A stretch of DNA of 64,000 nt, taken from the IMG/VR virus record IMGVR_UViG_3300040801_001224, positions 248,001-312,000 of that record. One strand, 5' to 3'. A program made the position numbers and the translations under genes. Every line of letters begins with the position of its first letter. Within the stretch, counting starts at the first letter, position 1. This document shows, piece by piece, positions 5,102 through 24,637 of this stretch. The notes under the pieces were generated by a model. It ran no database searches, was not told where the DNA came from, and saw only the letters and a program-made list of their open reading frames with translations.

Positions 5102-5163
5102 CGTGTGTTTTAATTTATTTATGATAAATAAATAATATACGTTGTTAATAAAGGCAGACACAC

Positions 5164-5466
5164 ATGGCAAGACCAAAACCGAATATTTTGCTTGAGAATC
5201 TTGATAAGAAGACTTATAAAGCAGAACAAATACTTGAAGCAGATGCTGTATATGCGGTATTCTATCAGGGTAAGGCAATTAACTTGCGATCGCTAAACAA
5301 GTTAGTGAGCTACCCTGGCCCTAAGTATAAGAAGGTAAGTTTTGCCAATAAAGGATCTGCCTTCAACCTTGCTGACAAATTAAACGCAATGTTTCAAACA
5401 GATGAGTTCGAAGTGTTTATGTTAGTCAAGGGGGATAAAATCGTAGAACATGAACAAGATTCGTGA
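5164..5466 (+). CDS. hypothetical basic protein
   Basis: ORF track; GATAAATA upstream. Confidence 0.7.
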   Translation: MARPKPNILLENLDKKTYKAEQILEADAVYAVFYQGKAINLRSLNKLVSYPGPKYKKVSFANKGSAFNLADKLNAMFQTDEFEVFMLVKGDKIVEHEQDS

Positions 5467-5797
5467 AAAAATAGTTGACACTATATACGAGAACAACAAA
5501 GGTAAGTTTGATAGAAAGGACGTAGAAAACTTAGTATTCCTTAGACCGGACACAATACGTTTAAGGTATCATGGATTTATGTTACTGAAACGTTTGTTTG
5601 ATACATACACATTTCCTATAGATCCAGAACATCCAAAGCCGGCATTATATGCTAGAGACCTATTACACTTACACAGAGAGATGAAGTTTCCATATTACAT
5701 TTCTAAAACTGACATCCATTTGTTCAGTGAACAGGATGCTTTCATTATTAAAATATATGGGAACATAAGGACCTGGCTCGATAGTTTCGATAAATAG
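5450..5797 (+). CDS. hypothetical protein
   Basis: ORF track; overlap coupling. Confidence 0.7.
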   Translation: MNKIREKIVDTIYENNKGKFDRKDVENLVFLRPDTIRLRYHGFMLLKRLFDTYTFPIDPEHPKPALYARDLLHLHREMKFPYYISKTDIHLFSEQDAFIIKIYGNIRTWLDSFDK

Positions 5798-5816
5798 GTT
5801 TATGAGGGAGTAACTA

Positions 5817-7694
5817 ATGATTAAAACAGACATAAATGAGGCAGTTAACCTGCACTGTTTATTGAGTGTTACAGATGAGAATGGCATTATTATTGACGCC
5901 AATCGGAAGTTCTGCGAAACCACAGGTTACTCTCTCGAAGAAATCAAAGGCCAGAAGCATTCGATGTTTAAATCGAACCAGCATCCCAAAGCGTTTTACG
6001 AGGATTTATGGAAAACAATATCCACCGGCAACATATGGCAATCTGAGATATGTGACCTAAATAAAGCTGGTGAAGAATGGTGGGCTGAGACTACAATCCT
6101 CCCTCAAATGGATGAGCATGGCAAAATATATCAATATGTGTCAGTTAAAACTCATATAAGAAAACCAACCGCAGAATCTCCTCATCTGCCCAGAAATATC
6201 ATTCGTGATGTTTCAAATGAAATAGTATTATTCAATGAAGATACACTTAGAATCGTTGACGTTAATGCTAAGGTTTGCTGTAACACTGGTTACGTTGAAG
6301 ATGGTGAATTTGAAAAGTTAACACTCCTGGATATCCTTAGCGAGTATGACAACGATGGCATACAAGAAATAGTTTCAAAAGCAAAGTATAGAAATGAAAC
6401 AGTGGAATTTGAGACTGTCGTAGAAAGGAAAGACGGTACATATTATGATGCTCTTGTGAGAGTTCAAAACTACCAAAAAGAAGATAACAATACGTTTGTC
6501 GCTTCTATTAAAGACCTAACACAACAAAAAAAGCATGAAATGGAAATAAGCCAAGCTAAGAAGATGGAAGTACTCAGTGAGGTAACAAGCAACATTGCTC
6601 ATGACTTCAACAATCTTCTTGCCACTATACTTGGTTTTAATAAGCTAATTGAGATGCAGAGTATCAGTGGTGAGTTTGACCGCAATAAAATATTAAATTA
6701 TTCAAAGAATATTGTTGACGCAGGAAATAAATCAAAAGAACTAGTTGCTAGTATGGTTGAGTTCTCTAAGAAAGCTGACAGAGACATGACCAAATACAAA
6801 CTATACGAACTGTCTGGACTAGTTGAAGAATCACTTGATCTGTTGAGTGCTGTACTGCCTAGCGATATCACGCTATCAAAGAAACTTGATTCTAACTTAC
6901 ACGTAAAAACCAATAACATCAAATTACACCAGATTATCATGAATCTATGCTTGAACGCCAAAGACGCTATTGATCAAACTGATGGCACAATTGAAGTTGG
7001 CGTTAGAATATATACTGATGAAATAGACAAATGTACCTCATGTAGAGAAAACTTACAGGGATCTTACATTGAGTTATATGTCAAAGACAACGGCAAGGGG
7101 ATAAGTCAAGAAAAACTAAAAGATATATTCAAGCCATATTATACAACAAAGTCTGATTTGAATGGTACTGGGACAGGCCTTTCTACTGTACATAAAATTA
7201 TGCACGAACATGAAGGACACATAGTAGTTAAGTCTATTCCTCAGGTAGGAAGTGTGTTCAGCATGTTATTCCCGTTTGTCGAACAGCCAGCACATGAAAA
7301 TGATGAAGAGACTGAATATAAACCAATGCCAGGCGGTGGTCGACAACTTCTCATTGTTGATGATCAACCAGCATTAGGACTATTCCTGCAAGATCTCACA
7401 AAGGAACATGGTTATGAGCCAATATATTTTCAGGACGGCAACCAAGCCTATGATTACTATGTTGGCCACCATAACGAAATTTCAGCAGTTATTACTGACA
7501 TGGGTATGCCAGGTATGAATGGCGTCGAGCTCGTAAAGAAAATATTTGAAATTACATCAGACCCGAAGGTTATTGTATGTTCAGGCAATGTTGCTCAGAT
7601 TGACTTCAATGAATTGCCTAAAACCTGTGCTGTGCTACCAAAGCCCATTAACATCAGTGACTTCTTCCAGGAACTTGACAGTTTAATCTATTGA
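5817..7694 (+). CDS. cytoplasmic hybrid sensor histidine kinase (PAS-PAS-HisKA-HATPase-REC)
   Basis: PAS NRKFCETTGYSLEEIKG; H-box AHDFNNLL; N-box QIIMNLCLNAKDA; DNGKGI; YTTK..GTGTGL; receiver IVDDQ, TDMGMPGMNG, PKP. Confidence 0.95.
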   Translation: MIKTDINEAVNLHCLLSVTDENGIIIDANRKFCETTGYSLEEIKGQKHSMFKSNQHPKAFYEDLWKTISTGNIWQSEICDLNKAGEEWWAETTILPQMDEHGKIYQYVSVKTHIRKPTAESPHLPRNIIRDVSNEIVLFNEDTLRIVDVNAKVCCNTGYVEDGEFEKLTLLDILSEYDNDGIQEIVSKAKYRNETVEFETVVERKDGTYYDALVRVQNYQKEDNNTFVASIKDLTQQKKHEMEISQAKKMEVLSEVTSNIAHDFNNLLATILGFNKLIEMQSISGEFDRNKILNYSKNIVDAGNKSKELVASMVEFSKKADRDMTKYKLYELSGLVEESLDLLSAVLPSDITLSKKLDSNLHVKTNNIKLHQIIMNLCLNAKDAIDQTDGTIEVGVRIYTDEIDKCTSCRENLQGSYIELYVKDNGKGISQEKLKDIFKPYYTTKSDLNGTGTGLSTVHKIMHEHEGHIVVKSIPQVGSVFSMLFPFVEQPAHENDEETEYKPMPGGGRQLLIVDDQPALGLFLQDLTKEHGYEPIYFQDGNQAYDYYVGHHNEISAVITDMGMPGMNGVELVKKIFEITSDPKVIVCSGNVAQIDFNELPKTCAVLPKPINISDFFQELDSLIY

Positions 7695-7719
7695 CACCAC
7701 CACTTTTCTTTGTTATAAT
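7691..7719 (+). promoter_or_regulatory. sigma70-type early promoter with CCAC box
   Basis: TTGACA-17-TATAAT. Confidence 0.85.
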
Positions 7720-7725
7720 GTACGT

Positions 7726-7950
7726 ATGAATTATGATACGTTTGTAACAGAAGTTAAGAAGCTTGGTGTTAAAAAACTCCTAAAAGAGGTCACTGAGTAT
7801 GTCGGTATATCCCCCACACAACAACGCTACGCCGAGTACAAAGGACAGCTCGTGGGCGCATACAGTCCAGCACAAGGCGGGGTCATATTTAAAAAGCCAC
7901 CTAACCGTTGGTCAAAGAGTGGCCGCAAATTTGAGGATGTTGATATCTAA
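7726..7950 (+). CDS. hypothetical protein
   Basis: ORF track; directly after promoter. Confidence 0.7.
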   Translation: MNYDTFVTEVKKLGVKKLLKEVTEYVGISPTQQRYAEYKGQLVGAYSPAQGGVIFKKPPNRWSKSGRKFEDVDI

Positions 7951-8300
7951 TGCTAGTCTCTAAAAAAGATACAATGAAAAAAATCACTGCTCGGTGGCCT
8001 AAAGAACCAACCAATAAAATTCGAGCCATCAAAGCCGTGCGGTCTATAGCCGATGTTAACTTAAAGGACGCAAAGAATTGGATTGAAAACAATCGTGTCG
8101 ACTCAGTATCAGGTTGGGTTGAATCACATCGAGTAGAAGACATTAAAAATTTAGTGTTAAGTAGTGGCGGTGATTGCGTATCAAACTCACAATTTGACAA
8201 ATATCGGGACGACATCAAAGAAATAGCTATGGCCGCCATGCTTGCCGACGATACTGAAGTAGCTGAAGAAATACTTAATTTTATAAATAAGTTCAGTTAA
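7950..8300 (+). CDS. protein with ribosomal bL12 C-terminal-domain-like segment
   Basis: NKIRAIKAVRSIADVNLKDAKNWIE resembles the bL12 CTD signature. Confidence 0.6.
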   Translation: MLVSKKDTMKKITARWPKEPTNKIRAIKAVRSIADVNLKDAKNWIENNRVDSVSGWVESHRVEDIKNLVLSSGGDCVSNSQFDKYRDDIKEIAMAAMLADDTEVAEEILNFINKFS

Positions 8301-8759
8301 CTATTGCTTGATAATAGTCTTTACCACGCCTTGGTTAATCTCTGTATTACCTTTGGACTGTACGAAATGTTGCGCTCTAACACGATAGAACTCGCAGTTT
8401 AAAACACCAGCACTAAAACCTTCAATGCTACGTGGACACTGGGTTGCCGGAGAAGTTATTGTAATGTCTATATCAACTGACTCAGCACCATCACGCAATG
8501 ATGCCAATGGATTGGGTTCATCGTCAGGTAATAGATCAAAAGGTTCAGCAACATTCTTTCCGGTGAACGCTTCGTCAATAGTTAGTACTGCGGCCACACC
8601 AGCTTCGGCAGAGTTAAAGCTGATAAAATCATCCTGCATATTACCCGCCATCTTTAATTCTAATGTCGCATTAGTTGCCGCAAATACGCTAATGATTGTT
8701 AAAATAAGTAAGAATAATAGAGCAACTACTAGAGTCGCCCCTTGTTGATTTTGTTTCAT
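8301..8759 (-). CDS. pilX: type IV pilus minor pilin PilX-like protein
   Basis: Prepilin leader QQG|ATLVVALLFLLILTII, LELKMAGNMQD..F..AEAG; GATAAATA box at 8765-8772 on minus strand. Confidence 0.9.
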   Translation of the reverse strand: MKQNQQGATLVVALLFLLILTIISVFAATNATLELKMAGNMQDDFISFNSAEAGVAAVLTIDEAFTGKNVAEPFDLLPDDEPNPLASLRDGAESVDIDITITSPATQCPRSIEGFSAGVLNCEFYRVRAQHFVQSKGNTEINQGVVKTIIKQ

Positions 8760-8780
8760 AGTAGTATTTATCACGCATAC

Positions 8781-8842: not shown

Positions 8843-9469
8843 ATGGATAGAACAGTTATAGGACTCCACGGTTGGGGTAGTACTGGTGAGGGGTCAGCTA
8901 CCCTACAACGTGCGAGAAAATATTTCGATAAAATCGGAGTTGAATTTATCACTCCCACCTACGATTGTACCGATCCAGATGGTACAGCAAAATTACTCTT
9001 GGAAACATTGAAAGACTGTAAGACTATTGATCCATTTATAATGGGTATTAGCTATGGTGGTTTCTGGGCTCGTTGGTTGGCTAACCAAGCCGAAGCGGCT
9101 TCCCTGTTCATGTTGAATCCTGCCCTTGATGCTTATGCTCAAACTAAAAAATATTTAGGCGAGAATAAACATTACGTCACTGGGCTCTCATACTGGTTCA
9201 TCCAGGCACGTAGATTCCAATTAAGAAAATATCAGATAACCGTAGACAAACCATGTATTCCAATGACAGCTATTATTGCGATGGATGATGACATTGTGCC
9301 ACCATTTGTCACAGAAAATATGATAGGTCCGGATCGATGTAACATAGAATACGTTACCGGCGGTCACCGATTAGAAAAACCAGAACTGTGGCTTCCAAAG
9401 TTAGCAGAAGCATTTAACGGATCTAATCCAACAATGAAAAAGTCAGGTGTTTGTCGGAATACAGCTTGA
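8843..9469 (+). CDS. YqiA/YcfP-like alpha/beta hydrolase
   Basis: LHGWGS, GISYGGFWA nucleophile elbow, LNPAL, DDIVP, GGH. Confidence 0.85.
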   Translation: MDRTVIGLHGWGSTGEGSATLQRARKYFDKIGVEFITPTYDCTDPDGTAKLLLETLKDCKTIDPFIMGISYGGFWARWLANQAEAASLFMLNPALDAYAQTKKYLGENKHYVTGLSYWFIQARRFQLRKYQITVDKPCIPMTAIIAMDDDIVPPFVTENMIGPDRCNIEYVTGGHRLEKPELWLPKLAEAFNGSNPTMKKSGVCRNTA

Positions 9470-9494
9470 CAAGACCACATTTTCTTGCTATAAT
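9466..9494 (+). promoter_or_regulatory. sigma70-type early promoter with CCAC box
   Basis: TTGACA-17-TATAAT. Confidence 0.85.
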
Positions 9495-13542: not shown

Positions 13543-13621
13543 GGCGGCTATAGCTTAACAGGTTTAAAGCCCCTCTCTGTGAAAGAGGAAGATGTCGGGT
13601 CGGATCCGACTAGTCGCCCCA
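13543..13621 (+). tRNA. tRNA-His(GTG)
   Basis: G-1, C73, CCTCT-CTGTGAA-AGAGG, CCA; atypical T loop GTCGGAT. Confidence 0.9.
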
Positions 13622-13627
13622 AACAAC

Positions 13628-13703
13628 GGTAATGTAGCTCAGTGGTAGTAGCACATGATTCATACTCATGCGGTCGTTGGTTCAAATCCAACCATTACCA
13701 CCA
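13628..13703 (+). tRNA. tRNA with CAT anticodon (probably elongator Met)
   Basis: cloverleaf, CATGA-TTCATAC-TCATG, CCA. Confidence 0.9.
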
Positions 13704-13710
13704 AATTTAT

Positions 13711-13783
13711 ACTCTGTTGGAGAAACCGGTTATCTCGTCAGACTTTCAATCTGGAATTACGGGTTCGAGCCCCGTACAGAGTG
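13711..13783 (+). tRNA. tRNA-Glu(TTC), no encoded CCA
   Basis: ACTCTGT/ACAGAGT, TCAGA-CTTTCAA-TCTGG. Confidence 0.9.
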
Positions 13784-13794
13784 CAAACTATTAC

Positions 13795-13823
13795 TTGACA
13801 TTACCACTTTTTAATAGTATAAT
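13795..13823 (+). promoter_or_regulatory. sigma70-type early promoter with CCAC box
   Basis: TTGACA-17-TATAAT. Confidence 0.85.
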
Positions 13824-13842
13824 GTCAATATTAAGAAGTAAG

Positions 13843-14003
13843 TGTGTTTACAGGGTGTGAAGGCATGGGAAACGACATGCCGACAAATTCTCGAATGTCA
13901 GAGATAGGCACTGGTGTTTGAGAATGGATAAAGCCTCACCGCCTAAGAGCCATGAGCTCTATTGAGGTTGCTGGTTAGATTCCAGCCGCACCCTGTAAAC
14001 ACA
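13843..14003 (+). ncRNA. structured RNA with 15-bp closing stem and T-arm-like hairpin
   Basis: 13843-13857 pairs perfectly with 13989-14003; GGCATG/CATGCC; GCTGG-TTAGATT-CCAGC; own promoter. Confidence 0.7.
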
Positions 14004-14216
14004 TTAAGATAATGGTCTAAGCTGACCGTCGCGACAACCGATATGCTAAGTAACTGATTTAGCGGTTAGTGAAACACATAGAGGACAATGCTTCAAGGAG
14101 GATTTCCACTGCCTTGTAAAACAAAACGGTGGAGCCAAATTCAATGGGACCTCCCTGGTGATATATTACGCAAACGTCATAGTTTGTTAGCGCAACCATA
14201 GGCCCGCCAAATTTAA

Positions 14217-14293
14217 GGGGATGTAGCATAGTTGGTTAATGCGCCGGCCTGTCACGTCGGAGACCGCGAGTTCAAGTCTCGTCATTCCCGCCA
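14217..14293 (+). tRNA. tRNA-Asp(GTC)
   Basis: cloverleaf, CCGGC-CTGTCAC-GTCGG, CCA. Confidence 0.95.
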
Positions 14294-14300
14294 ATTTTAA

Positions 14301-14391
14301 GGAAGGTACCGCTAAGTGGCTGGCAACCTGGTTTGAACCCAGGGGCGTTGATTGAGAGTCGGCGGGGGTTCGATTCCTCTACCTTCCTCCA
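14301..14391 (+). tRNA. tRNA-Ser(TGA)
   Basis: CCTGG-TTTGAAC-CCAGG, long variable arm, CCA. Confidence 0.92.
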
Positions 14392-14559
14392 AACCGGTAA
14401 CCGTTAGTATCTAGACTATGTGAGGCACCACAGACGTGGCGAACGGTTAGCATAGTTGACCAATAGGTGGTGGAGAATGCCACTGGGACGGTTTAATGCT
14501 GTCGCAAGACCGCTATAGGGGAGCAACGATACTGAGAGTGCGAACCCCACCAATTTTAT

Positions 14560-14650
14560 AGTAGGTTGCCAGAGTTGGTCTATTGGCGCGGACTGCTAAT
14601 CCGTTGGGTTCTAACGAGCCACGTGGGTTCGAATCCCACACCTACTGCCA
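14560..14650 (+). tRNA. tRNA-Ser(GCT)
   Basis: GCGGA-CTGCTAA-TCCGT, long variable arm, GCCA. Confidence 0.92.
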
Positions 14651-14656
14651 AATAAT

Positions 14657-14743
14657 GTATGTGCGTCAGAGTTGGAGAGCTGAAGCGGACTGTAAACCCG
14701 TTGCCAAAGTGCTGAATAGGTTCGATTCCTATCACATACACCA
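14657..14743 (+). tRNA. tRNA-Tyr(GTA)
   Basis: GCGGA-CTGTAAA-CCCGT, long variable arm, CCA. Confidence 0.92.
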
Positions 14744-14820
14744 AATTTCGTTTACGTAGGCTTTCGATATAAGCCCGGGGGGAAGCATGAAACCCCCTCA
14801 AGAACATGCTTATCTTTAAT

Positions 14821-14898
14821 GCGTCTATAGTGTTCAACGGCTCAGCACGTTAGGCTTCCACCCTGAAAGTTTCGGTTCGAATCCGAATAGACGCTCCA
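14821..14898 (+). tRNA. tRNA-Gly(TCC)
   Basis: GCGTCTA/TAGACGC, CTTCCAC loop, TCCA. Confidence 0.92.
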
Positions 14899-14983
14899 AT
14901 TTTTCTTGCCGATGTGGTGTACAACACATCATTAAATAATGCCATACACGTAAAGTCACTGTGGGGGCAAGAACATTTTATAT

Positions 14984-15058
14984 GGGTCACGGTCTGGGTA
15001 ACCGGGTTGGTCTCCAAAACCGACTGTCTGCCAATTTCGATTATTGGGTGGCCCGCCA
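14984..15058 (+). tRNA. tRNA-Trp(CCA), degenerate D and T arms
   Basis: GGGTCAC/GTGGCCC, TTGGT-CTCCAAA-ACCGA, GCCA. Confidence 0.7.
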
Positions 15059-15143
15059 ATTTTAATGAGAGGAAACAAAGGATGAAACCTGGTAAGATCT
15101 AGGCGGACAACATACAGTCCGCCATATAAATTAAATATATGAC

Positions 15144-15220
15144 GGACTCATAGCTCAATTTGGTAGAGCCCCGGTCTTTTAAATCGGTTGTTCCAGGTTC
15201 GAGGCCTGGTGGGTCCACCA
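15144..15220 (+). tRNA. tRNA-Lys(TTT)
   Basis: CCGGT-CTTTTAA-ATCGG, CCA. Confidence 0.93.
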
Positions 15221-15336
15221 ATTTTTATCTTCGCAGACCTGTAACCATATTCTGCCTCCGCCGTCGACGAAAACAGGATGGGCTGTCGGCGCAAGGTTTG
15301 TAGTTATCCTGACCCAAAACTACATCCATTTTCTGT

Positions 15337-15419
15337 CGCAGGCGAGTGGAACGGATATATAAACCATACCGGGCTCATAACCCGTGTGATACTGGGTTCG
15401 ACTCCCAGGTCTGCTACCA
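15337..15419 (+). tRNA. initiator tRNA-fMet(CAT)
   Basis: unpaired C1, GGG/CCC anticodon stem, enlarged D loop. Confidence 0.85.
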
Positions 15420-15421
15420 AT

Positions 15422-15497
15422 GGAGAGTTAGCTTTGTAGGTCAAAGCGTCCGGTTGAAGCCCGGAAGAACCTGGTTCGAATCCTGGACTCTCCACCA
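15422..15497 (+). tRNA. tRNA-Phe(GAA)
   Basis: TCCGG-TTGAAGC-CCGGA, CCA. Confidence 0.9.
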
Positions 15498-15516
15498 AAT
15501 TTAGATAAATAGTGTT

Positions 15517-15993
15517 ATGCGATTAGATGAGATACTAAAAGAAGAAACACAGATACAATTCGGATCAGCATTTATGAATCCAGTGACTAAAGATAAGACG
15601 AAATTATTTTTAGACAGCGAATTGTATATAGACCAGGAAGGCAAAGAATTCAAAAGTTGGTGGAGCAATCCAGAACAACATTTTAAGAATGGCGGTGTTT
15701 TTGCTGTGGCATATGCAGATGGAGAACCAGTAGGCGTTGGTGTCATAAAACTACCTGACGAAGTGCTTAGTGGTGAAGTAGATGGCAAGGAAATCGCGTA
15801 TATAGGAGTAGTCGGATTCTTAGTAAAAGAAGAATTTAGAAACTATGGGTTAGCAACACGGTTGGCTTATCTACTCGAAAACAAAATACTTAGTGTATAC
15901 AATCTTCCAGACAATACTACGCCAATTGTAGTTTGTACTGGCAAAGCCTGTGAAGTAGCACAGAATTTCAAAAGAATACAAATCGAAAAATAA
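15517..15993 (+). CDS. GNAT-family acetyltransferase-like protein with short MRLDEILKE leader
   Basis: FLVKEEFRNYGLATRL resembles GNAT motif A; GATAAATA at 15504. Confidence 0.7.
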   Translation: MRLDEILKEETQIQFGSAFMNPVTKDKTKLFLDSELYIDQEGKEFKSWWSNPEQHFKNGGVFAVAYADGEPVGVGVIKLPDEVLSGEVDGKEIAYIGVVGFLVKEEFRNYGLATRLAYLLENKILSVYNLPDNTTPIVVCTGKACEVAQNFKRIQIEK

Positions 15994-16051
15994 CAATATA
16001 TTGACAACGCCACTTACTTGTGTTATTATAATAATATAAGGAGAAGATGTT

Positions 16052-16249
16052 ATGATATATGAAAGCTCAAAAGACTACGGTACCGGTGAAGTCACCCTAC
16101 TGTTTGATAATCGAACACCATCCTATACGGAAATATCAGAGCATGTTGAGGAGAACTATTCAATGACGTCCTTCTCATACATGATTGAGGAACCTACCGA
16201 ATATAATGGTCTGGTAAATCCTGGTATAGTGAGGGTAATTCAACAATGA
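16052..16249 (+). CDS. hypothetical protein
   Basis: ORF track; promoter TTGACA at 16001; AAGGAG SD. Confidence 0.65.
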   Translation: MIYESSKDYGTGEVTLLFDNRTPSYTEISEHVEENYSMTSFSYMIEEPTEYNGLVNPGIVRVIQQ

Positions 16250-16428
16250 AATTCCAAGTTACTGTAATAGAAAGCGAACGTGGCTGGGGTCAAAAGATTG
16301 ACGAAGTCCGTGAGTTCAACAGTGCTGACAAAGCATGGAAATTTTACGATGAAGTAAACAGCAGAAATACAGAACGTACTGCTCCAGACATATACTGGCA
16401 AGCACAGCCGCCAGTAAGAATAGAATAA
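16246..16428 (+). CDS. hypothetical protein
   Basis: ORF track; ATGA coupling. Confidence 0.65.
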   Translation: MKFQVTVIESERGWGQKIDEVREFNSADKAWKFYDEVNSRNTERTAPDIYWQAQPPVRIE

Positions 16429-16429
16429 T

Positions 16430-16505
16430 AGTCCCGTAGCTCAGTCAGGAGAGCGCAGAGCTGATAACTCTGAGGTCGCAGGAGCAAAGCCTGCCGGGAC
16501 TACCA
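16430..16505 (+). tRNA. tRNA-Ile(GAT), atypical T loop AGCAAAG
   Basis: CAGAG-CTGATAA-CTCTG, CCA. Confidence 0.85.
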
Positions 16506-16512
16506 ATTTAAC

Positions 16513-16587
16513 GCCGAGTGGTCTGGATGTTTAGGTGCTGGTCTGCAAAACCATGTTAACAGGGTTAGATTCCCTGACTCGGCTCCA
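16513..16587 (+). tRNA. tRNA-Cys(GCA)
   Basis: GCCGAGT/ACTCGGC, CTGCAAA loop, TCCA. Confidence 0.88.
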
Positions 16588-16588
16588 A

Positions 16589-16665
16589 GCCCCTATAGCT
16601 TAACTGGTTAAAGCGTCGAGCTCATAACTCGGGGAGTCCTTGTTCGAATCAAGGTGGGGGCACCA
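16589..16665 (+). tRNA. tRNA with CAT anticodon (probably Ile2)
   Basis: GCCCCTA acceptor resembles Ile2; CTCATAA loop. Confidence 0.88.
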
Positions 16666-16672
16666 ATTTTTT

Positions 16673-16830
16673 TAACTTGTGCCGGAACTGGTATACGGGG
16701 GTGTGGTCTCAGTCAATATGAATAGGGTTGTGAATAAAGAATAGCAACTCTTGTACCCAGGGCGAAAACCACCAGGCGGTAAGCAGTACAACGCAAAACG
16801 CCATTGTAGGTTCAAATCCTACCAAGTTAA
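16673..16830 (+). tRNA. class II (Leu/Ser-type) tRNA gene with about 53-nt insertion in the anticodon loop
   Basis: TAACTTG/CAAGTTA acceptor, Leu-type D arm, GTAGG-TTCAAAT-CCTAC, GTGGT/ACCAC stem enclosing 60 nt. Confidence 0.65.
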
Positions 16831-16902
16831 TTATGCGCGGTCCACGTTCCTCGCTGTAACTTTTGTTACATAGGTTGTGATTATGGCGGCGCACCATTTT
16901 AT

Positions 16903-16976
16903 AGGGTCATAGTGTAATGGTAACACCCGAGATTTTGATTCTCGTATTCCAGATTCGAGTTCTGGTGACCCTGCCA
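16903..16976 (+). tRNA. tRNA-Gln(TTG)
   Basis: CGAGA-TTTTGAT-TCTCG, GCCA. Confidence 0.93.
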
Positions 16977-17005
16977 ATTTTACGCAGTTCGTGGTAAATA
17001 CAGTT

Positions 17006-17392
17006 ATGTGTACCCTGACGAACTTTTGTGTATTAGATGACATCGACGGCATCACAATCATATGTTTAACAGACGATATGAGTCAACAAGATGCCATGCT
17101 TCTTATCGATCACTTGAGGGAACACGAACTGTACCATTATCGTCTGTTGGATTTTAATCAGTATCCATGTCAGATGTCTTCAAAAGACATTGAAGCACTT
17201 GCTGAATACGACAAGAAGTTTCCAGAAAAAAACTATGGTGCTCTGATTGCTAAAGACAACCTAACATATGGTTTAATGAGAAAATATGCGGCCCATCGTG
17301 AAATGGATGATCTAGCAACTATACGTGTATTTAGGACCATGCGTGAAGGCATAGCGTGGTTAAAAAAGAAAAGACACGATCAAGATAAATAA
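17006..17392 (+). CDS. STAS/SpoIIAA-like protein, copy 1
   Basis: LLDF...A(L/I)IA....YG..R...RVF....G..WL pattern; paralog of next gene. Confidence 0.65.
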   Translation: MCTLTNFCVLDDIDGITIICLTDDMSQQDAMLLIDHLREHELYHYRLLDFNQYPCQMSSKDIEALAEYDKKFPEKNYGALIAKDNLTYGLMRKYAAHREMDDLATIRVFRTMREGIAWLKKKRHDQDK

Positions 17393-17396
17393 TACT

Positions 17397-17780
17397 ATGC
17401 TAATACATGACTTATACGACTTTAACTATGTCGATGGTATTCTTATGACTACCCTTAAACATAGCCCGACACTTGAGACAATCAGACAATTGGTTGATTA
17501 TCAGATCAAGACAGACCGTTATCGTTATCGTTTATTTGATTTTAATGGTTTTACTCCTGCTGAAATGAGGGCAAGTGAAGTCAGAAGATTAGCAGACTAT
17601 GATCGAGCATATCCAGAAGAAAGTTACTCAGCTATCATAGCTGATGACGCACTATTGTTTGGCATTGAACGCATGTTTGAAACCTACAGAGACCGCAGTG
17701 GTTATTCTCGAGTAAGAGTATTCAACGATAAAGAAAATGGTCTAACCTGGCTTAAATTACTACAAGCCAATAATTCTTAA
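17397..17780 (+). CDS. STAS/SpoIIAA-like protein, copy 2
   Basis: YRYRLFDFN, AIIADDALLFGIERMF, RVFNDKENGLTWL. Confidence 0.65.
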   Translation: MLIHDLYDFNYVDGILMTTLKHSPTLETIRQLVDYQIKTDRYRYRLFDFNGFTPAEMRASEVRRLADYDRAYPEESYSAIIADDALLFGIERMFETYRDRSGYSRVRVFNDKENGLTWLKLLQANNS

Positions 17781-17798
17781 AATCTTTTGAAAAAAAGG

Positions 17799-17827
17799 TT
17801 GACAAACCCATTATACTCTAGTATAAT
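17799..17827 (+). promoter_or_regulatory. sigma70-type promoter of the giant ncRNA
   Basis: TTGACA-17-TATAAT. Confidence 0.85.
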
Positions 17828-17833
17828 ACAATT

Positions 17834-18697
17834 CAAAGTTAAGCAATGTCGCATATCGACGATAAGGCACTGAAAGGTGTCGAAGGATGGGAATCCAACA
17901 GCCCATCACCAGCAATGGTAGAGGTATGCAAGCCGAGACTCCAATAAGATATCAGTCATGCTGGTATTAGGAGACAAAGGCTCTCTTAGGGAAGTACCCC
18001 CAGGCCAACGGTGAGGGGCGAAAGTAACAGGTGAAGCTGACTACCTAGGGTTCAAAGAGCTAAGTTGACAGAGTCAAAGGGTAGTGTTACTTGTACAAGA
18101 CTTAGCGGTCGAGTGCTGTGACGCAGTCTTATAGGTAGTGTCCACAACCAGGGCATAATATCTAGAAAGACAACTGAAAAGTAACCTTAGCGGGTGAAAC
18201 AGTATTCGGTGTAGCGTATTCTGTACTCCAAAAGAGTATGGACCGTTTTAGAGGCGCACATCGAGGTTGGTTTAAGTTAGCTCAATTGGTTAGAGCAACG
18301 GCATTTTGGAGCCGTGGGTTCTTGGTTCAATTCCAAGACTTACATACAAAAACGCAAAGACGCCTCTACGTAGTAGTAACGATTAAATGACTTAATTGTC
18401 CGTACACTCCGGTGAATACGGAATAGGTTGAACTCGCAAGGTGACGCCTAGTTTGTTTGAAGTCGCACATTGGATTTAGCGATCCTTAACTGCTCGCAAG
18501 GCAGATGGAACACTGACAGCAGAAACGACTACTATAAAAGTGTAAACGCCAGCACTATAAAATGGGCAGTCATGCTTGATACCGAAAGACGAGACCACGG
18601 TCTGTCCAAGGGGAGTAGGGCTTAACTAGCAAGGTCGCACTTGTTAGGTACGAGTTCCGAATGATCAAGTGTAATACGTCCTAACTCTCAGACGTAT
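17834..18697 (+). ncRNA. probable GOLLD giant ncRNA with embedded tRNA-like domain
   Basis: about 860 nt with no ORF over 60 aa, GC-richer, many hairpins, two CTCGCAAGG motifs, 3' GTGTAAT..CTAACTCTCAG hairpin, tRNA-cluster context; family assignment from memory. Confidence 0.7.
18271..18344 (+). tRNA. tRNA-like domain (Gln TTG-like, 8-nt loop, no CCA) inside the giant RNA
   Basis: GCTCAATTGGTTAGAGC D arm, ACGGC/GCCGT, CTTGG-TTCAATT-CCAAG. Confidence 0.7.
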
Positions 18698-18783
18698 CTA
18701 ATTTATCATTTAGGCAAAAGTATTCATAAAGTTTTCAGTGTTAAATTTAAGATAGATAAATAACACTGTACTTAATAAGTAAT

Positions 18784-18870
18784 GCCGAGGTGGAGGAACT
18801 GGTAGACTCGCGGTCTTTAGGTGTCCGTTCCATATTTGGAGTGTGGGTTCGACTCCCACCCTCGGCACCA
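18784..18870 (+). tRNA. tRNA-Leu(TAG)
   Basis: GCCGAGG/CCTCGGC, TTTAGGT loop, long variable arm. Confidence 0.9.
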
Positions 18871-18886
18871 ATTGAAAAGTTTTAAT

Positions 18887-18962
18887 GCCACTATAGCTCA
18901 GCTGGTAGAGCGCCACACTTGTAATGTGGATGTCCCGTGTTCGATTCATGGTGGTGGCACCA
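18887..18962 (+). tRNA. tRNA-Thr(TGT)
   Basis: CCACA-CTTGTAA-TGTGG, CCA. Confidence 0.95.
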
Positions 18963-19090
18963 AACATAATGGTCCTGTTCCTATAATAGCAGGTATTGGT
19001 GGTAGAAATGTGTAAACGGTTTAAGGGCACCACCCTTCCTTAAACTCCGGACGATACGTAACCGGCCATAAATTTAAGGAGAATATTAAG

Positions 19091-19167
19091 GGGGCGGTAG
19101 CTCAATTTGGGAGAGCACCTGTTTTGCAGGCAGGCGGTTGCGGATTCAAGTTCCGCCCGCTCCACCA
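19091..19167 (+). tRNA. tRNA-Ala(TGC)
   Basis: G3:U70, CCTGT-TTTGCAG-GCAGG, CCA. Confidence 0.93.
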
Positions 19168-19217
19168 GTCCGACTCAATAAAACTCCACCAAAATTCCTA
19201 TATAGATAAATACTAAT

Positions 19218-20048
19218 ATGATAGGAAAATGCTCATGTGTTATATGTAAAAAACAGTACTCTGGAAAGGGGATACACACCCATGCCGACAGAACTCATGG
19301 TGACGAAGAGACAAAAGCCAAATATAGTTCAGGATATAATGGCAGATACAATGATCCAGAACATATGAAAAACTTAAAAAAGTCATTAAAAAAGTTTTAC
19401 GACAAAGAGTTAGGCCCTAAAAAAACATATAATGTTTCTTGCCATAAGTGTGGTAAAGATTTCGATGTAACCGAAAGAGAAAATCAATTTCCGTCTAAAG
19501 AAAAATATTTCTGTTCTGCAACTTGTAGAAATACTAGGTCGCATACAGAAGCCACAAAACAGAAAATAAAAAAATCACTCAGAAAATATAATGGGCCTGA
19601 AAAAATATATGAAAAGACATGCCCTTGGTGTAGTAAAATTCACACTACTAAGGAAAAAAATAAAAAATTCTGCTCGCGAGATTGTGCCACAAAACATAAA
19701 TCGGCAGAAGCCAGGAAACATCGTTCGGCATATAAGAACTACAGGGCAGATTGCGAATTTAGGTTTAATCTAAAAGATTATCCAGAAGAATTTAATTTCG
19801 CACTTATTGAAGAGCATGGATGGTATAGTGCGGCCAATAGAGGAAATAATCTATATGGTGTGAGCCGAGATCACATAGTAAGTGTGAAATACGGCTTTGA
19901 GAATAATATAGATCCAGCTATTATATCTCATCCAGCAAATTGCCAGTTAATGATACATTCGGACAATGTATCAAAATATACGAATAACGATTTAACAATC
20001 GACCAGCTTTTAGAGAAGATCGAAATCTGGAATAATAAATACATTTAA
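19218..20048 (+). mobile_element. HNH-type homing endonuclease gene with Zn-finger modules
   Basis: CxxC repeats, FCSxxC, SRDHIVSV..HPANCQLMIHSDNVSK. Confidence 0.85.
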
Positions 20049-20163
20049 CAACACCTTCTAAGCCTCTGTTTACATGCTCACCCCGGGAGGTTACTTAAAC
20101 GGCTCTCCAAGCCGCTCACGCTGAACAATTAGAGTTCATATGTCATGCTGTGGAGAGTTATTT

Positions 20164-20237
20164 GCGTCCATAGTTTAGTGGTAAAACGATAGCTTGCCAT
20201 GCTGTAGTCCCGAGTTCGACTCTCGGTGGACGCTCCA
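20164..20237 (+). tRNA. tRNA-Gly(GCC)
   Basis: GCGTCCA/TGGACGC, TTGCCAT loop, TCCA. Confidence 0.93.
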
Positions 20238-20371
20238 AACACGATGGTGGTCCGGGCTGATAAACTGGACGCCACCCAGTGTATTGTGGTGGATAGGCTG
20301 GAACCCTTTTGGAGCATGGTCCCAAAACTCTGAATAGAACGATCCTCTGCTCACATCACATAGTTTATATT

Positions 20372-21397
20372 ATGATAAAATACATTCTATTACTCTTATT
20401 ATTGGTTGGTTGCTCAGGTGATGATAACCCTGAGCCTGTTACTGAATTCGGCTTTACTATGCTTCAGCCCAATTCATACCAATTACAGTGGCCTGAAGAT
20501 CCAGATGCCACATATTACGTCATAGAAACAAACACAACGTCCAATATACTTAACATTGACTTATCAACTGTTGAATTGACTGATAACAAATATGTGTTTG
20601 AGTGGGATGTATTATTCAACGGCTCAGTACATCATAGGATAACGGCATGTACGATGAGTGGCTGTAAGGAGCCTGGAGAATGGTTATTAATATTTGAAGT
20701 GCCCCAATTTCCGGATACGCCATATCAGATAGACGTTCTAGCTGTATATGACAATAGAGCGTTTGATATAGACAACGGTATCGCAACTAAAATAAACAGG
20801 GACTTTGCTAAAATCAACGACATACTGCTCAATAACAATTTAGAGAGCTATGTAAAGTTTAACTTGGTGACAATGCGTCTGGACAGAACGTTTGATTGGC
20901 CACGTGACAACACAAGTGCTAATGAAGCGTTAATAAACGATCCTGAAATACAGGCATTGCGTGATGATGCTGGTGCAGATATAGTTATAGGTATAAACAC
21001 TGATCCGGGTTTCCCTGGTGGTGGTACCGGCAAAATGTATATGGATTCGGATAGAAAACAATTCTTCACGTTTTACACATACACCGAAATAGAACAACAG
21101 GCATACGCCACAGTAGCACAATATACGTTAGGTTCGGAAGATCACGTACTCTTACATGAGATGCTACACACATTTGGGTTACAGCATGACCTACAGACAG
21201 CGTTCATAGACTTCAATGTCAGTGCTGAATATTCTTATGCTCATGGTTTGCAGAGTGAACGGGAATGTACTATTATGGCAAGGGCGTGTCCACGTAATCT
21301 AATACTAGCAGATGAACCCACTAATACCGGTGGTTTTTCATCAAGTAACAAATTGCGTTTTATGGAAACAATTCCTGTTATAGCAGATTTTAGATAA
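20372..21397 (+). CDS. lipoprotein metzincin (reprolysin-like) zinc metallopeptidase
   Basis: lipobox LVG|C; HEMLHTFGLQHD; Met-turn CTIMA. Confidence 0.85.
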   Translation: MIKYILLLLLLVGCSGDDNPEPVTEFGFTMLQPNSYQLQWPEDPDATYYVIETNTTSNILNIDLSTVELTDNKYVFEWDVLFNGSVHHRITACTMSGCKEPGEWLLIFEVPQFPDTPYQIDVLAVYDNRAFDIDNGIATKINRDFAKINDILLNNNLESYVKFNLVTMRLDRTFDWPRDNTSANEALINDPEIQALRDDAGADIVIGINTDPGFPGGGTGKMYMDSDRKQFFTFYTYTEIEQQAYATVAQYTLGSEDHVLLHEMLHTFGLQHDLQTAFIDFNVSAEYSYAHGLQSERECTIMARACPRNLILADEPTNTGGFSSSNKLRFMETIPVIADFR

Positions 21398-21402
21398 AAC
21401 TA

Positions 21403-21431
21403 TTGACAATCCCACTATCCTGTAGTATAAT
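21403..21431 (+). promoter_or_regulatory. sigma70-type early promoter with CCAC box
   Basis: TTGACA-17-TATAAT. Confidence 0.85.
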
Positions 21432-21437
21432 ACCTAT

Positions 21438-21773
21438 ATGAAAGTTACAGGAACGCAAACTAAAGAAGTTAAGATTGAAATTAGTGATTATCAGATTGAA
21501 AAGATCATTAGAAAATCCAACTTACCCATTAAAGAATACGCAAATATATTAGAATCTAAATATATTAGAGAAGTATTCAAGGAAGATGGTTACAGCGAAT
21601 CCAACTACCCAGTATATGATTATGAACGTAAAAAATGGGAAATATGGGTTGAAGCATATCATGGTAGTGATTGGACTAATCCTGTTCGTGATGCAACAGA
21701 GAATGAAATTGCTGTAATGAATGCTATTCAAGAAATTAGAAATGTGTTCCTCGCAGAAGAGTTAATTAAATAA
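21438..21773 (+). CDS. hypothetical protein
   Basis: ORF track, after promoter. Confidence 0.7.
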   Translation: MKVTGTQTKEVKIEISDYQIEKIIRKSNLPIKEYANILESKYIREVFKEDGYSESNYPVYDYERKKWEIWVEAYHGSDWTNPVRDATENEIAVMNAIQEIRNVFLAEELIK

Positions 21774-21976
21774 TGGATAGAATACCAACCATAAATCATA
21801 CGGACCGTCCGGTTGGCCATGATAAATATGATGACATGCTATTCCGTACTCTAGATGAATTTATGGAAATGCATGATCAAGACTATCTCACAATATCTAG
21901 ATTTGATGGTGAGCTAGTTGCTCGTGTAGGTATTGAAGATTTATTTAAGTACATGAAAGAGTACATGGATCGGTAA
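21773..21976 (+). CDS. hypothetical protein
   Basis: TAATG coupling. Confidence 0.65.
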   Translation: MDRIPTINHTDRPVGHDKYDDMLFRTLDEFMEMHDQDYLTISRFDGELVARVGIEDLFKYMKEYMDR

Positions 21977-22161
21977 TGTTCTTTTTAGAGTTACCTAGAC
22001 CATGGTACACCTATACAGTCAAAGATCTAGGAGTGGTTGAAAGTACTGTTAAAAGGAATAGAAAGATTGTTTTTACGGCCATGATGGAGAGTGATAATCC
22101 TGAATGGTTGAGAAAGTTAAAGCAACAGGAAAGGTTGCTTGAAAGATTAAAGGGTGCGTAA
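21976..22161 (+). CDS. hypothetical protein
   Basis: TAATG coupling; stop lies inside tRNA-Asn. Confidence 0.6.
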   Translation: MFFLELPRPWYTYTVKDLGVVESTVKRNRKIVFTAMMESDNPEWLRKLKQQERLLERLKGA

Positions 22162-22226
22162 CTCAGTGGTAGAGTAGTCGGCTGTTAACCGATAGGTCGG
22201 ATGTTCGAATCATCCCGTGCCCGCCA
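22152..22226 (+). tRNA. tRNA-Asn(GTT)
   Basis: GTCGG-CTGTTAA-CCGAT, GCCA. Confidence 0.93.
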
Positions 22227-22230
22227 AATT

Positions 22231-22309
22231 TTGAAGTACCCTAGAAGCAAGGGAAACCAAGTCGGAGACATTTTATATGTTGGTCAGGCGACAGGCGAGG
22301 GTACTTCAA
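22231..22309 (+). ncRNA. small RNA cassette with 12-bp perfect closing stem
   Basis: TTGAAGTACCCT/AGGGTACTTCAA. Confidence 0.55.
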
Positions 22310-22328
22310 TTTTATATTAAGGTAGAAC

Positions 22329-22751
22329 ATGCAGATATTAACATTCATAGAAGACAGGGAAGCGTATGCCATTGACATAATGCAGGTCAAAGAAATTATA
22401 CGTTTAGATGAAAGTGCTGTGCGTCCTGTGCCTGGTGAAGGACCAGAGCATTATGGTTTAATGTATTTGCGTGAGACACCAATCAGTGTATTTAATGCCA
22501 ACATTGTGTTAGGATTAGCCGACACTGAAATAACAGATGAAACCCGTATTATTATATTGGAAGACGACGGACAGTTATATGGATTTTCATGTGACTCAAT
22601 ACGTGAAATATATCGGGTAGATGAAGGGGATATACAGAACCCTGTGGAACGTAGTAGATTTATACGTGGGGTTATATACTGTAAGGAACGTGATGAAACA
22701 GTCGTAATACTGGATCACGAAAACTTATTTGAATCCTTTTCAGAAAGATAA
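22329..22751 (+). CDS. cheW: chemotaxis coupling protein CheW
   Basis: YAIDIMQVKEII, GLMYLRETPISVF, RIIILE, GFSCDSIREI, FIRGVI, VVILDHENL. Confidence 0.9.
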   Translation: MQILTFIEDREAYAIDIMQVKEIIRLDESAVRPVPGEGPEHYGLMYLRETPISVFNANIVLGLADTEITDETRIIILEDDGQLYGFSCDSIREIYRVDEGDIQNPVERSRFIRGVIYCKERDETVVILDHENLFESFSER

Positions 22752-22752
22752 T

Positions 22753-22809
22753 CGGGGTGTAGCTCAGTCTGGTAGTGTTCACTATTTGAGCAAATTTTTA
22801 CTCCGACCA
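22753..22809 (+). pseudogene. internally deleted tRNA-Pro relic
   Basis: CGGGGTG-TAGCTCAGTCTGGTAG 5' part and TACTCCG-ACCA 3' end; anticodon and T arms absent. Confidence 0.7.
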
Positions 22810-22822
22810 GATAAATATATGT

Positions 22823-23422
22823 ATGGATTATAACGAATACATAAATGAAGATGGCACGTATACCTCTCCGAAAAACGGAAAAGTATATAAGTCAAAAAAA
22901 GCGTTAATATCGCATTTAAACTTTAAGAAATCTAAAACTACTGGATTCGCGGTAGTGAATAACACTAAAGTAAAATGTCAATATTGTGAGAAAGAAACTA
23001 CGCCACCGAATATTAAGAAGCATGAAGAATCATGTTATATGAATCCAAAAAATATTCGAGAATGTGTAGTTTGTGGGACGATCATTAAGAACAAGGAAAG
23101 TAAAGGAACTTGTTCACATGCTTGTTCAAACACGTATTACCGCCATGGTAAAGAAGGTGGAACGCAATATAAAACAGATGAAGAGCTTATATCAAGGAAT
23201 AGATATCAAGACCTTTGTTTTAGGCACCATGGTAAAGAATGTATCGTGTGTGGTGAAAAAAAGATTGTAGCGGCACACCATATAAACCACGACCACAATG
23301 ATAATCGTGTAGAAAATTTAGTTCCTCTATGTCCGACGCATCATCAGTACATACACAGTAGGTACGCAGATGAAGTACAACCATACATAGATGAATTTTT
23401 AGAAAAGTTAAACTCTCTGTAG
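22823..23422 (+). mobile_element. HNH homing endonuclease gene
   Basis: CIVCG..VAAHHINHDHNDNRVENLVPLCPTHH. Confidence 0.92.
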
Positions 23423-23488
23423 TGTAGTCTGGTAACACCCATGCTTTGGGAGCATGTATCTCAAGTTCGAATCTTGACAGAGAGACCA
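23413..23488 (+). tRNA. tRNA-Pro(TGG)
   Basis: CTCTCTG/CAGAGAG, CATGC-TTTGGGA-GCATG; overlaps HNH stop. Confidence 0.93.
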
Positions 23489-23495
23489 AAATTTA

Positions 23496-23572
23496 GGAAC
23501 GGTAGTTCAGTTGGTTAGAATACCGGCCTGTCACGCCGGGGGTCGCGGGTTCGAATCCCGTCCGTTCCGCCA
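23496..23572 (+). tRNA. tRNA-Asp(GTC), second copy
   Basis: canonical cloverleaf, GCCA. Confidence 0.96.
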
Positions 23573-23599
23573 AATTTAACAACATAAGGAAATGAAACA

Positions 23600-23932
23600 A
23601 TGAAATAGACTAAACCAACATTACGTTTGTGGAAATGGGGAGAAGATAGATTTTCCCATCTTGGATACAAAATATTCACAGTGTTTTACTGTAAGTACTT
23701 TGACTTTTATATATTTAAATATCAACCAGGTGCCTATATACCAAAACACAAAGATCCAGGAAAATGGCATTACAGATTAAATTTTATATTTGGTGGTGAT
23801 GGCAAGTTTATATGTAAAGGTGCGTTAATAAACACCAAGTACATAACACTGTTTAGAGCGGACAAGTATTACCATAAGACAACACCAACTTCCACGACAC
23901 GTTATGTTGTAAGTTTTGGTCTAAAGTTTTGA
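23600..23932 (+). CDS. 2OG-Fe(II) oxygenase-like protein with in-frame TAG at codon 3 from the best start (or TTG start at 23627)
   Basis: IPKHKDPG (HxD), HYRLNF, distal H and RYVVSFG; AAGGA-9nt-ATG AAA TAG in frame. Confidence 0.65.
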
Positions 23933-23999
23933 GCCATTGAGGCCAGCCTAAGGATTCTAAACCCAGAAGGCGCCGGTTCAAGTCCGGCATGGCTCACCA
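23931..23999 (+). tRNA. aberrant 69-nt tRNA-like gene, possible CTA anticodon
   Basis: GAGCCAT/ATGGCTC-ACCA and GCCGG-TTCAAGT-CCGGC perfect; tiny D arm; weak anticodon stem around TTCTAAA. Confidence 0.5.
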
Positions 24000-24012
24000 A
24001 ATTGTATAAGGA

Positions 24013-24288: not shown

Positions 24289-24291
24289 AAT

Positions 24292-24626: not shown

Positions 24627-24637
24627 TTTATTTTATT

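Follow-up and report, generated by a model that had tools for sequence, protein, structure and literature searches.

We analysed a gene for a hybrid sensor histidine kinase in the genome of an uncultured phage, recovered from a microbial-mat metagenome. The virus record (IMG/VR IMGVR_UViG_3300040801_001224) is 328,096 bp long, has terminal repeats, and is rated 100% complete by CheckV. The window, the whole 64,000-nucleotide stretch studied here, corresponds to bases 248001–312000 of that record. Coordinates below refer to the window unless given as record positions. A sequence-only reading of this DNA had proposed a full-length PAS-PAS hybrid histidine kinase, under a phage late-type promoter, at 5789–7694. 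The interval joins two things: the promoter octamer does begin at 5789, but the kinase open reading frame (ORF) starts at 5817. The gene, its signals, and its domains are arranged as follows.

5123–5130, forward strand: upstream GATAAATA element, ahead of a 100-amino acid (aa) ORF at 5164–5466
5789–5796, forward strand: GATAAATA, putative late-type promoter element of the kinase gene
5802, forward strand: predicted transcription start, an A at motif start +13 with a T before it
5804–5810, forward strand: Shine-Dalgarno sequence GAGGGAG, read from the sequence, 6 nucleotides (nt) ahead of the ATG
5817–7694, forward strand: hybrid sensor histidine kinase gene, 625 aa (protein P0001)
5856–6161, forward strand: PAS1, aa 14–115, homologous to the flavin PAS domains of MmoS, Aer, and NifL
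6204–6521, forward strand: PAS2, aa 130–235, a second PAS_9 stretch with a PAS fold in the structure model
6573–6773, forward strand: DHp/HisKA domain, aa 253–319, with predicted phospho-accepting His262 in AHDFNNLL
6915–7277, forward strand: catalytic ATP-binding (CA) domain, aa 367–487, with N, G1, F, and G2 boxes
7350–7670, forward strand: fused receiver, aa 512–618, with D515/D516, D561, S589, and K609

Pfam recognises each module of P0001: PAS (residues 18–109), a second PAS (about 130–235), HisKA (253–319), HATPase_c (367–487, E 9.8e-19), and Response_reg (512–618). The HisKA match scores 24.6 bits in the protein search and 29.1 bits, above the cut-off, in a six-frame search. The translation reads SNIAH262DFNNLL at the H box, MN376LCLN380AKDA at the N box, D424NGKG428 at the G1 box, IF438KPYYTTK at the F box, and G450TGTG454LS at the G2 box. 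In the receiver, the acidic pair D515/D516, the phospho-accepting D561, S589 (T in the ortholog P0002, introduced below), and K609 are all in place. Hence, the protein does have the full PAS-PAS hybrid kinase layout first proposed, with intact H, N, G1, F, and G2 boxes and a receiver aspartate. The catalytic residues (H262 and the N, G1, F, and G2 boxes) are invariant across four phage lineages. So far as sequence tells, this is not the catalytically dead protein that the sequence-only reading had allowed for. We conclude that the kinase is full length and looks catalytically competent. The highest Kyte-Doolittle mean over 19 residues is only 1.39. Hence, as had been supposed, the kinase is predicted to be soluble and to have no transmembrane helix.

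The kinase core finds its best solved match in the DHp-CA structure of CckA (5IDJ, E 3.1e-24). The best NCBIfam models are PRK13557, VirA-like, and CckA, with scores far below requirement (225 versus 631 bits, and 200 versus the 1000 bits demanded of a CckA equivalog). By these comparisons the protein is a member of no named kinase equivalog and an ortholog of no named kinase. Note that the ATP-lid region of the CA domain contains a cysteine pair, C406-x-x-C409 (7032–7043), that is invariant in the four phage orthologs and also found in the nearest bacterial homolog, P0004. This pair could be a second redox-sensitive site.

The ownership of the gene was addressed by homology, gene order, phylogeny, and codon usage. 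A search of 5.8 billion proteins returned two orthologs of the same length, P0002 (60% identity) and P0003 (43%), and a scan of IMG/VR returned a third, L028 (40%). Beneath these phage proteins, bacterial kinases in the 5.8 billion reach about 35% identity at most. The best cellular homologs are 26–35% identical and are spread over Desulfobacterota, Gammaproteobacteria, Burkholderiales, and others. Among 185,579 species genomes, no kinase homolog exceeds 34% identity. None of 50,697 phage records matched the region in a Megablast search. Using tblastn, partial matches only were obtained (at most 28% identity), many of them in records that are truly bacterial contigs with glnL, atoS, or TorS. 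The three orthologs lie on contigs from other samples and share the gene order of the window: exonuclease, ORFs of 93, about 161, about 100, and about 110 aa, kinase, small ORFs, and a gene for an L12 C-terminal domain. This setting agrees with the earlier description of a kinase embedded among phage genes, since the record is that of a virus rated complete and the neighbours include exonuclease, virion, QueE, NadV, and HNH genes.

In a tree of 81 sequences, which carried out the phylogenetic comparison with bacterial kinases that had been suggested, the four phage proteins form one clade. The clade has a Shimodaira-Hasegawa-like approximate likelihood ratio test (SH-aLRT) support of 100, a long stem of 1.08 substitutions per site, and a position among bacterial hybrid kinases. 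GC content at third codon positions is 0.347 for the kinase, against a genome mean of 0.345, and the codon-usage distance of the gene falls in the 11th percentile of the large genes of the phage. The CA domain is best conserved (80, 51, and 54% identity to the orthologs) and the PAS domains least (32–44%). The ratio of nonsynonymous to synonymous substitution rates (dN/dS) is about 0.1–0.2, and these values are rough because dS between the orthologs is saturated. Finally, the region is matched at 100% identity, with no joints, by Logan contigs from the source sample; one of them spans the 3' junction (7344–7981). Read depth in that sample is about 3x. The sequence-only reading had named chimeric host DNA as the finding that would undo it, and the four-lineage synteny, the phage-like codon usage, and the jointless contigs rule that explanation out. 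These comparisons indicate that the kinase gene is the phage's own and probably vertically inherited, rather than stray host DNA.

We then considered how the gene might be expressed. No other 8-mer is as over-represented in the 328-kb genome as the octamer GATAAATA: the forward strand has 78 copies and the reverse 21, where a second-order model predicts 11.7 per strand (forward strand z 18.7). The T4 late consensus TATAAATA is not enriched, with 14 and 18 copies. Alignment of the 99 copies gives the extended consensus (not G)GATAAATA-N4-T-A. At motif start +13, an A is present in 76 of the 99, and a T comes just before it in 57. Since there is no conservation upstream of the motif beyond position -1, this promoter class has no -35 element. 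Copies of the motif precede a start codon by 18–35 nt or an ATG by exactly 5 nt. Genes downstream include those for the tail sheath, a tail fibre, two virion structural proteins, and a minor tail protein. The genome also encodes a gp55-family late sigma factor of 302 aa (record positions 65476–66384; phrog_12791, 3.7e-73; phrog_234, 9e-22; T4 gp55, E 3.9e-6). A T4 gp45 protein query for the sliding clamp matched nothing in the genome, though a divergent clamp could escape such a search.

The copy ahead of the kinase fits this pattern, with T5801-A5802 followed by GAGGGAG and then the ATG at 5817. It overlaps the TAG stop codon (5795–5797) of the ORF upstream. No sigma70-type site or terminator was found directly upstream of the kinase. 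The octamer likewise precedes the kinase in the P0002 lineage, and also in the P0003 lineage, where a 55-aa ORF intervenes. The second GATAAATA element, at 5123–5130, is kept at the same place in relatives (position 2307 of L006, 1888 of L002, and 9123 of L028), and could provide read-through into the kinase as well. Taken together, enrichment, virion genes downstream, conservation upstream of orthologs, and a gp55-type sigma gene bear out the late-type promoter of the earlier reading. That GATAAATA is a phage late-type promoter is, as a prediction, well supported.

Our next concern was the sensor. PAS1 matches the PAS-A domain of MmoS (3EWK), which binds flavin adenine dinucleotide (FAD), at E 4e-33 with about 50% identity over 101 residues. 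Matches to the PAS domain of Aer (8DIK, E 2.5e-19, 36% identity) and PAS1 of NifL (2GJ3, E 4.2e-11) follow, and flavin-type PAS structures outrank LOV domains in the search. A structure model was built from an alignment of three sequences. Its PAS1, PAS2, and receiver parts have predicted local distance difference test (pLDDT) values of about 75–89, and its DHp/CA core is poor (mean pLDDT 62, predicted template modelling score 0.30). Because of this core, the model was used for PAS comparison alone. According to Foldseek, modelled PAS1 superposes on the Aer PAS domain 8DIK with a root-mean-square deviation (rmsd) of 1.1 A. The best overall fold matches are NifL (top), a LOV-PAS-kinase, and MmoS. 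PAS2 gave weak matches only in the PDB, with no clue to a ligand or cofactor.

Flavin contacts are made by H53, N85, R115, and G28 in Aer, and the flavin site of MmoS consists of H132, N164, R195, G107, and T103 (PMC9668731). The histidine stacks on the isoalloxazine ring, the asparagine hydrogen-bonds N3/O4, and the basic residue sits over N5 (PMC9668731). PAS1 of the phage kinase keeps T19, G23, H48, and W65, with H48 and G23 invariant in the phage clade. P0001 has Lys at position 111, where the three orthologs have Arg; of 29 close PAS relatives, 19 have K and 8 have R. The contact asparagine is replaced by Asp80. The sequence-only reading had likened PAS1 to the FAD-binding domains of Aer and NifL. 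The homology is upheld by the E values and the 1.1 A fold match, but one of the defining residues fails. We conclude that PAS1 is, as judged from sequence and modelled fold, a true homolog of FAD-binding PAS domains. Since the homology holds but the contact asparagine is Asp80, flavin binding by P0001 is plausible yet unproven.

A hybrid kinase usually needs a partner to which its signal can pass, and the whole genome was searched with this in mind. Response_reg detected a second receiver, which stands alone, is 122 aa long, and is encoded at record positions 234873–235241. Its gene therefore falls outside the window, 18.6 kb ahead of the kinase on the upstream side. Its residues D9/D10, D58, T85, and K107 are intact. 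The gene follows a 90-aa ORF with a sigma70-type promoter and precedes the DNA polymerase gene. Receiver orthologs with 84, 65, and 49% identity hold the same place, between the 90-aa ORF and the DNA polymerase gene. The 65% ortholog is in runs SRR23998794, SRR23998787, and SRR23998770, which are the runs with the P0002 kinase, and the 49% ortholog shares its metagenome, 3300002231, with the L028 kinase. Hence, kinase and receiver travel together in at least three lineages. Note that these relatives were found by protein-database search; an IMG/VR scan with the receiver alone gave none. It had been stated that no response regulator is adjacent, and none does lie beside the kinase, but the receiver 18.6 kb away was missed. 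Because the phage encodes its own receiver, co-conserved with the kinase, part of the pathway may be phage-internal. The suggested rewiring of a host phosphorelay is without direct support.

No second kinase is encoded, according to a six-frame search of the whole genome. The genome also encodes two proteins with domains of cyclic di-GMP (c-di-GMP) metabolism, both outside the window.

Record 112033–114009: 658-aa GGDEF-EAL protein
Record 244152–244808: 218-aa GGDEF protein, with GATAAATA exactly 5 nt before its ATG

In the relative L091, a GGDEF gene is close to the receiver gene.

Among known systems, one of those closest to the phage kinase is MmoS, the FAD-binding tandem-PAS redox sensor of Methylococcus capsulatus. 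This is the best solved match to PAS1, and both PAS domains align. Equivalents of H132, G107, and T103 are kept, and each protein is a hybrid kinase to which a receiver is fused. The differences are N164 to Asp80, R195 to Lys111, and the minimal, 625-aa, phage-encoded form of P0001. MmoS itself is a far larger protein that has additional GAF, receiver, and Hpt modules. Aer, the aerotaxis receptor of E. coli, and NifL share with PAS1 the FAD-type PAS fold and sequence family, and NifL, the top overall fold match, has a PAS-PAS-kinase-like layout like that of the phage protein. Conversely, N85 of Aer corresponds to Asp80, and the output modules of Aer and NifL are unlike those of the phage kinase. 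Aer signals to CheA via HAMP, while NifL, which lacks phosphorylating kinase activity, binds to NifA. CckA/PRK13557-type hybrid kinases have the AHDFNNLL H box in common with P0001, which nonetheless scores far below the family cut-offs, and the phage encodes no ChpT-like or Hpt partner. Sequence comparison would thus have the phage kinase function like a minimal redox sensor kinase of the MmoS/NifL type, albeit one that fails a defining residue of FAD-binding PAS domains.

The promoter has its parallel in T4. Like the T4 late promoter TATAAATA and its sigma factor gp55, the phage has an 8-bp -10-like element, no conserved -35 element, virion genes downstream, and a gp55-family sigma factor. 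In T4 late promoters, the spacing to the likely start is the same as for GATAAATA. The phage element differs by one base, starting with G rather than the T of TATAAATA, and the phage sigma factor has 302 aa, compared to 185 aa in T4.

Virus-borne kinases are already present in databases. Examples are PHROG families 5982 and 10912, the 735-kb uncultured phage LR756501, and Microcystis phage MaAM05 (sasA). About 50 IMG/VR contigs, including phages of 290–500 kb, carry genes for histidine kinases or kinase-receiver fusions, some with small stand-alone receivers. None of these kinases is characterised, and all are at most 34% identical to the phage kinase. Because they fall elsewhere in the 81-sequence tree, the kinases of other huge phages are independent captures. 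Three other huge phage records (L029, L052, and L078; 189–500 kb), which have unrelated hybrid kinases, carry small stand-alone receivers of 129–162 aa. The pairing of a kinase with a lone receiver may therefore recur among huge phages. Hybrid kinases are encoded by the algal virus EsV-1 as well. In the open literature searched, phrases such as 'phage-encoded histidine kinase' led to no paper. A large survey of jumbo-phage genomics mentions histidine kinases in passing only (PMC7824862).

From these data we propose the following scheme. Late in infection, host RNA polymerase with the phage gp55-type sigma factor would transcribe the kinase from GATAAATA, which lacks a -35 element, starting at A5802. 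The motif class and the sigma gene are found in the genome, and the timing we infer from them. PAS1, in a dimeric soluble kinase, would most likely report the redox or energy state of the infected cell, in keeping with its homology; a flavin would be the expected cofactor, an expectation weakened by the Asn-to-Asp change at position 80. The signal would control autophosphorylation of His262, followed by transfer to Asp561 of the fused receiver, since the motifs for both steps are present. A partner would then pass the phosphoryl group on, or drain it back. The best candidate partner is the 122-aa phage receiver, reached directly or through a host Hpt protein. Alternatively, the signal may reach host regulators. 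Candidate outputs are the timing of lysis or of the late programme, and the phage's own c-di-GMP enzymes.

On balance, we lean towards a functional hybrid sensor kinase of the phage itself, located in the cytoplasm. Its gene would have been captured from bacteria long ago, then inherited vertically in an uncultured clade of jumbo phages distantly related to PA5oct, and would serve redox or energy sensing with the phage receiver as best candidate partner. A bolder version is possible, though we hold it tentatively. Here, kinase and stand-alone receiver would form a phage-autonomous two-component switch, in which the flavin-type PAS domain reads redox or energy state and the phage chooses accordingly how an infection is brought to its end, or begun. 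Examples would be the timing of lysis, a delay in starved hosts, or control of the c-di-GMP enzymes. The kinase might even be packaged in the virion for the next round.

Several observations weigh against the redox-sensing scheme. With respect to the sensor, PAS1 is only 38–44% identical among orthologs, making the sensor domains the least conserved. The flavin-contact residue that is Asp80 in P0001 is N in P0002 and P0003 but H in L028, and N occurs at this position in 26 of the 29 close PAS relatives. With respect to the partner, neither an Hpt domain (PF01627) nor a ChpT-like HPTransfase (PF10090) was matched anywhere in the genome, and a scan of it for HxxKG motifs gave no convincing small helical protein. 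Hence, of the parts that a self-contained phosphorelay would need, the receiver is in the same genome but the Hpt domain is absent, and a host Hpt protein is a possible link. It is only their co-occurrence that suggests the pairing of kinase and receiver, whose genes are 18.6 kb apart and have promoters of different classes. With respect to timing, none of the RNA sequencing runs searched for the region holds it, so late expression of the kinase is a prediction. In addition, the L028 kinase is preceded by a sigma70-like site plus CATAAATA. Since a sigma70-like promoter stands there instead, late timing would not be universal in the clade.

Some of these points feed rival explanations. The kinase might serve host take-over only, phosphorylating host Hpt proteins or response regulators late in infection, or draining them in phosphatase mode, with the phage receiver unrelated. 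Any multistep relay must indeed borrow a host Hpt protein, the core is of the widespread CckA/PRK13557-like HDFNN type that is common in hybrid relays, and receiver and kinase genes are unlinked and differ in promoter type. Even so, we think this unlikely. Kinase and stand-alone receiver are conserved together in at least three lineages, no host target can be named, and a distance of about 1 substitution per site from any cellular kinase speaks against tight mimicry of one host kinase. Somewhat less probable again is a degenerate or re-purposed sensor. In this case, PAS1 would have lost its flavin through Asp80, leaving a constitutive kinase or phosphatase, acting as a phosphate source or sink, or a sensor of some other signal. 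The substitution does fall on the flavin N3/O4 contact, where L028 has His, and the PAS domains evolve faster than the catalytic core. But H48, G23, T19, W65, and a basic residue at 111 are kept as in MmoS and Aer, both PAS domains are open and foldable in all four lineages, and PAS1 remains similar to the Aer domain (36% identity; 1.1 A rmsd for the model).

Note that promoter types could also be read in terms of virion delivery. T4 Alt is packaged and injected with the phage DNA. The kinase might similarly be made late, packaged, and injected, so as to act at the start of the next infection with an early-expressed receiver. A late-type promoter ahead of a non-structural regulator, and a receiver behind an early-type, sigma70-type promoter, would suit such a scheme. 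However, no packaging signal can be recognised, and a homolog is missing from PA5oct, a phage of known virion proteome (PMC7318152). Furthermore, an early-made receiver would persist until late, and the difference in timing needs no special cause. We therefore consider delivery in the virion quite improbable. The last alternative, an assembly chimera or host contamination in a viral contig, we reject as having next to no likelihood. We found no point in its favour, the only caveat being the read depth of about 3x. Against it are a gene order shared by four diverged lineages that come from different samples, phage-like codon usage, a phage promoter motif conserved upstream, and the 100% identical, jointless contigs, one of which crosses the 3' junction.

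The wider window shows how the kinase gene fits in the transcription of the phage. A second promoter class in the genome comprises about 70 sigma70-type promoters, several of them perfect (TTGACA-17-TATAAT), that cluster before small ORFs at 2.5–24 kb. Promoters of this class, and sites at which GATAAATA is combined with an ATG, include the following.

7691–7719, forward strand: perfect sigma70-type promoter (TTGACA-17-TATAAT, with TG), overlapping the kinase stop codon
8781–8809, same strand as the late-type promoters: perfect sigma70 promoter with TG
9466–9494, same strand as the late-type promoters: perfect sigma70 promoter with TG
15504–15519: GATAAATA plus ATG
17384–17399: GATAAATA plus ATG
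19205–19220: GATAAATA plus ATG
22810–22825: GATAAATA plus ATG
28645–28660: GATAAATA plus ATG
43702–43717: GATAAATA plus ATG
60674–60689: GATAAATA plus ATG

At the promoter at 7691–7719 the late unit reaches its 3' border and the next unit, of early type, begins. Because the three perfect sigma70 promoters alternate with late-type ones on the same strand, early and late units are interleaved. In about 10–12 genes, some elsewhere in the genome, the ATG lies exactly 5 nt past GATAAATA, where transcription is predicted to start, which points to a group of late mRNAs without a leader.

The phage genes around the kinase include those for QueE, a virion protein, and a 5'-3' exonuclease, with NadV/NatV and HNH endonucleases further on. 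Other features of the window are listed here.

1427–2344: QueE-like radical SAM gene
7950–8300, forward strand: 116-aa protein with a ribosomal L7/L12 C-terminal domain (Pfam 30.7 bits, cut-off 25.9)
8301–8774, reverse strand: 157-aa ORF with a PilX N-terminal domain, as in minor pilins of type IV pili (47.9 bits)
13544–28235 and 42839–42925: 26 tRNA genes
52821–55413: NAD salvage pair, a cytidyltransferase/Nudix-type protein and a nicotinamide phosphoribosyltransferase

The L7/L12-domain gene is two genes past the kinase and is found in related phage contigs too. The PilX-domain ORF is on the strand opposite to the adjoining genes. According to ARAGORN, the tRNA at 18270–18347 has a four-base anticodon (tttg). 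Judged by the tail sheath, the closest cultured relative is Pseudomonas phage PA5oct (41.7% identity), in which tblastn did not find a kinase homolog.

Peptides and host quorum signals are already known as cues to which phages respond. If our reading is correct, a sensor kinase with its own receiver, under purifying selection in jumbo phages of lytic type, would add direct sensing of the redox or energy state of the host. Should the phage-autonomous switch prove true, a lytic jumbo phage would be making decisions on sensory input by means of classical signalling parts of bacteria. A compact, soluble protein of 625 aa, with no membrane anchor, should be easy to express and assay, and a candidate partner is at hand. 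For an uncultured phage group, the promoter analysis also provides a transcription map, with about 70 sigma70-type early promoters, about 100 GATAAATA late promoters, and apparently leaderless late genes. The main value lies in the conserved kinase-plus-receiver pair. Even if this were merely a captured kinase with no special role, it would still be a clean case of huge phages keeping host signalling parts over the long term.

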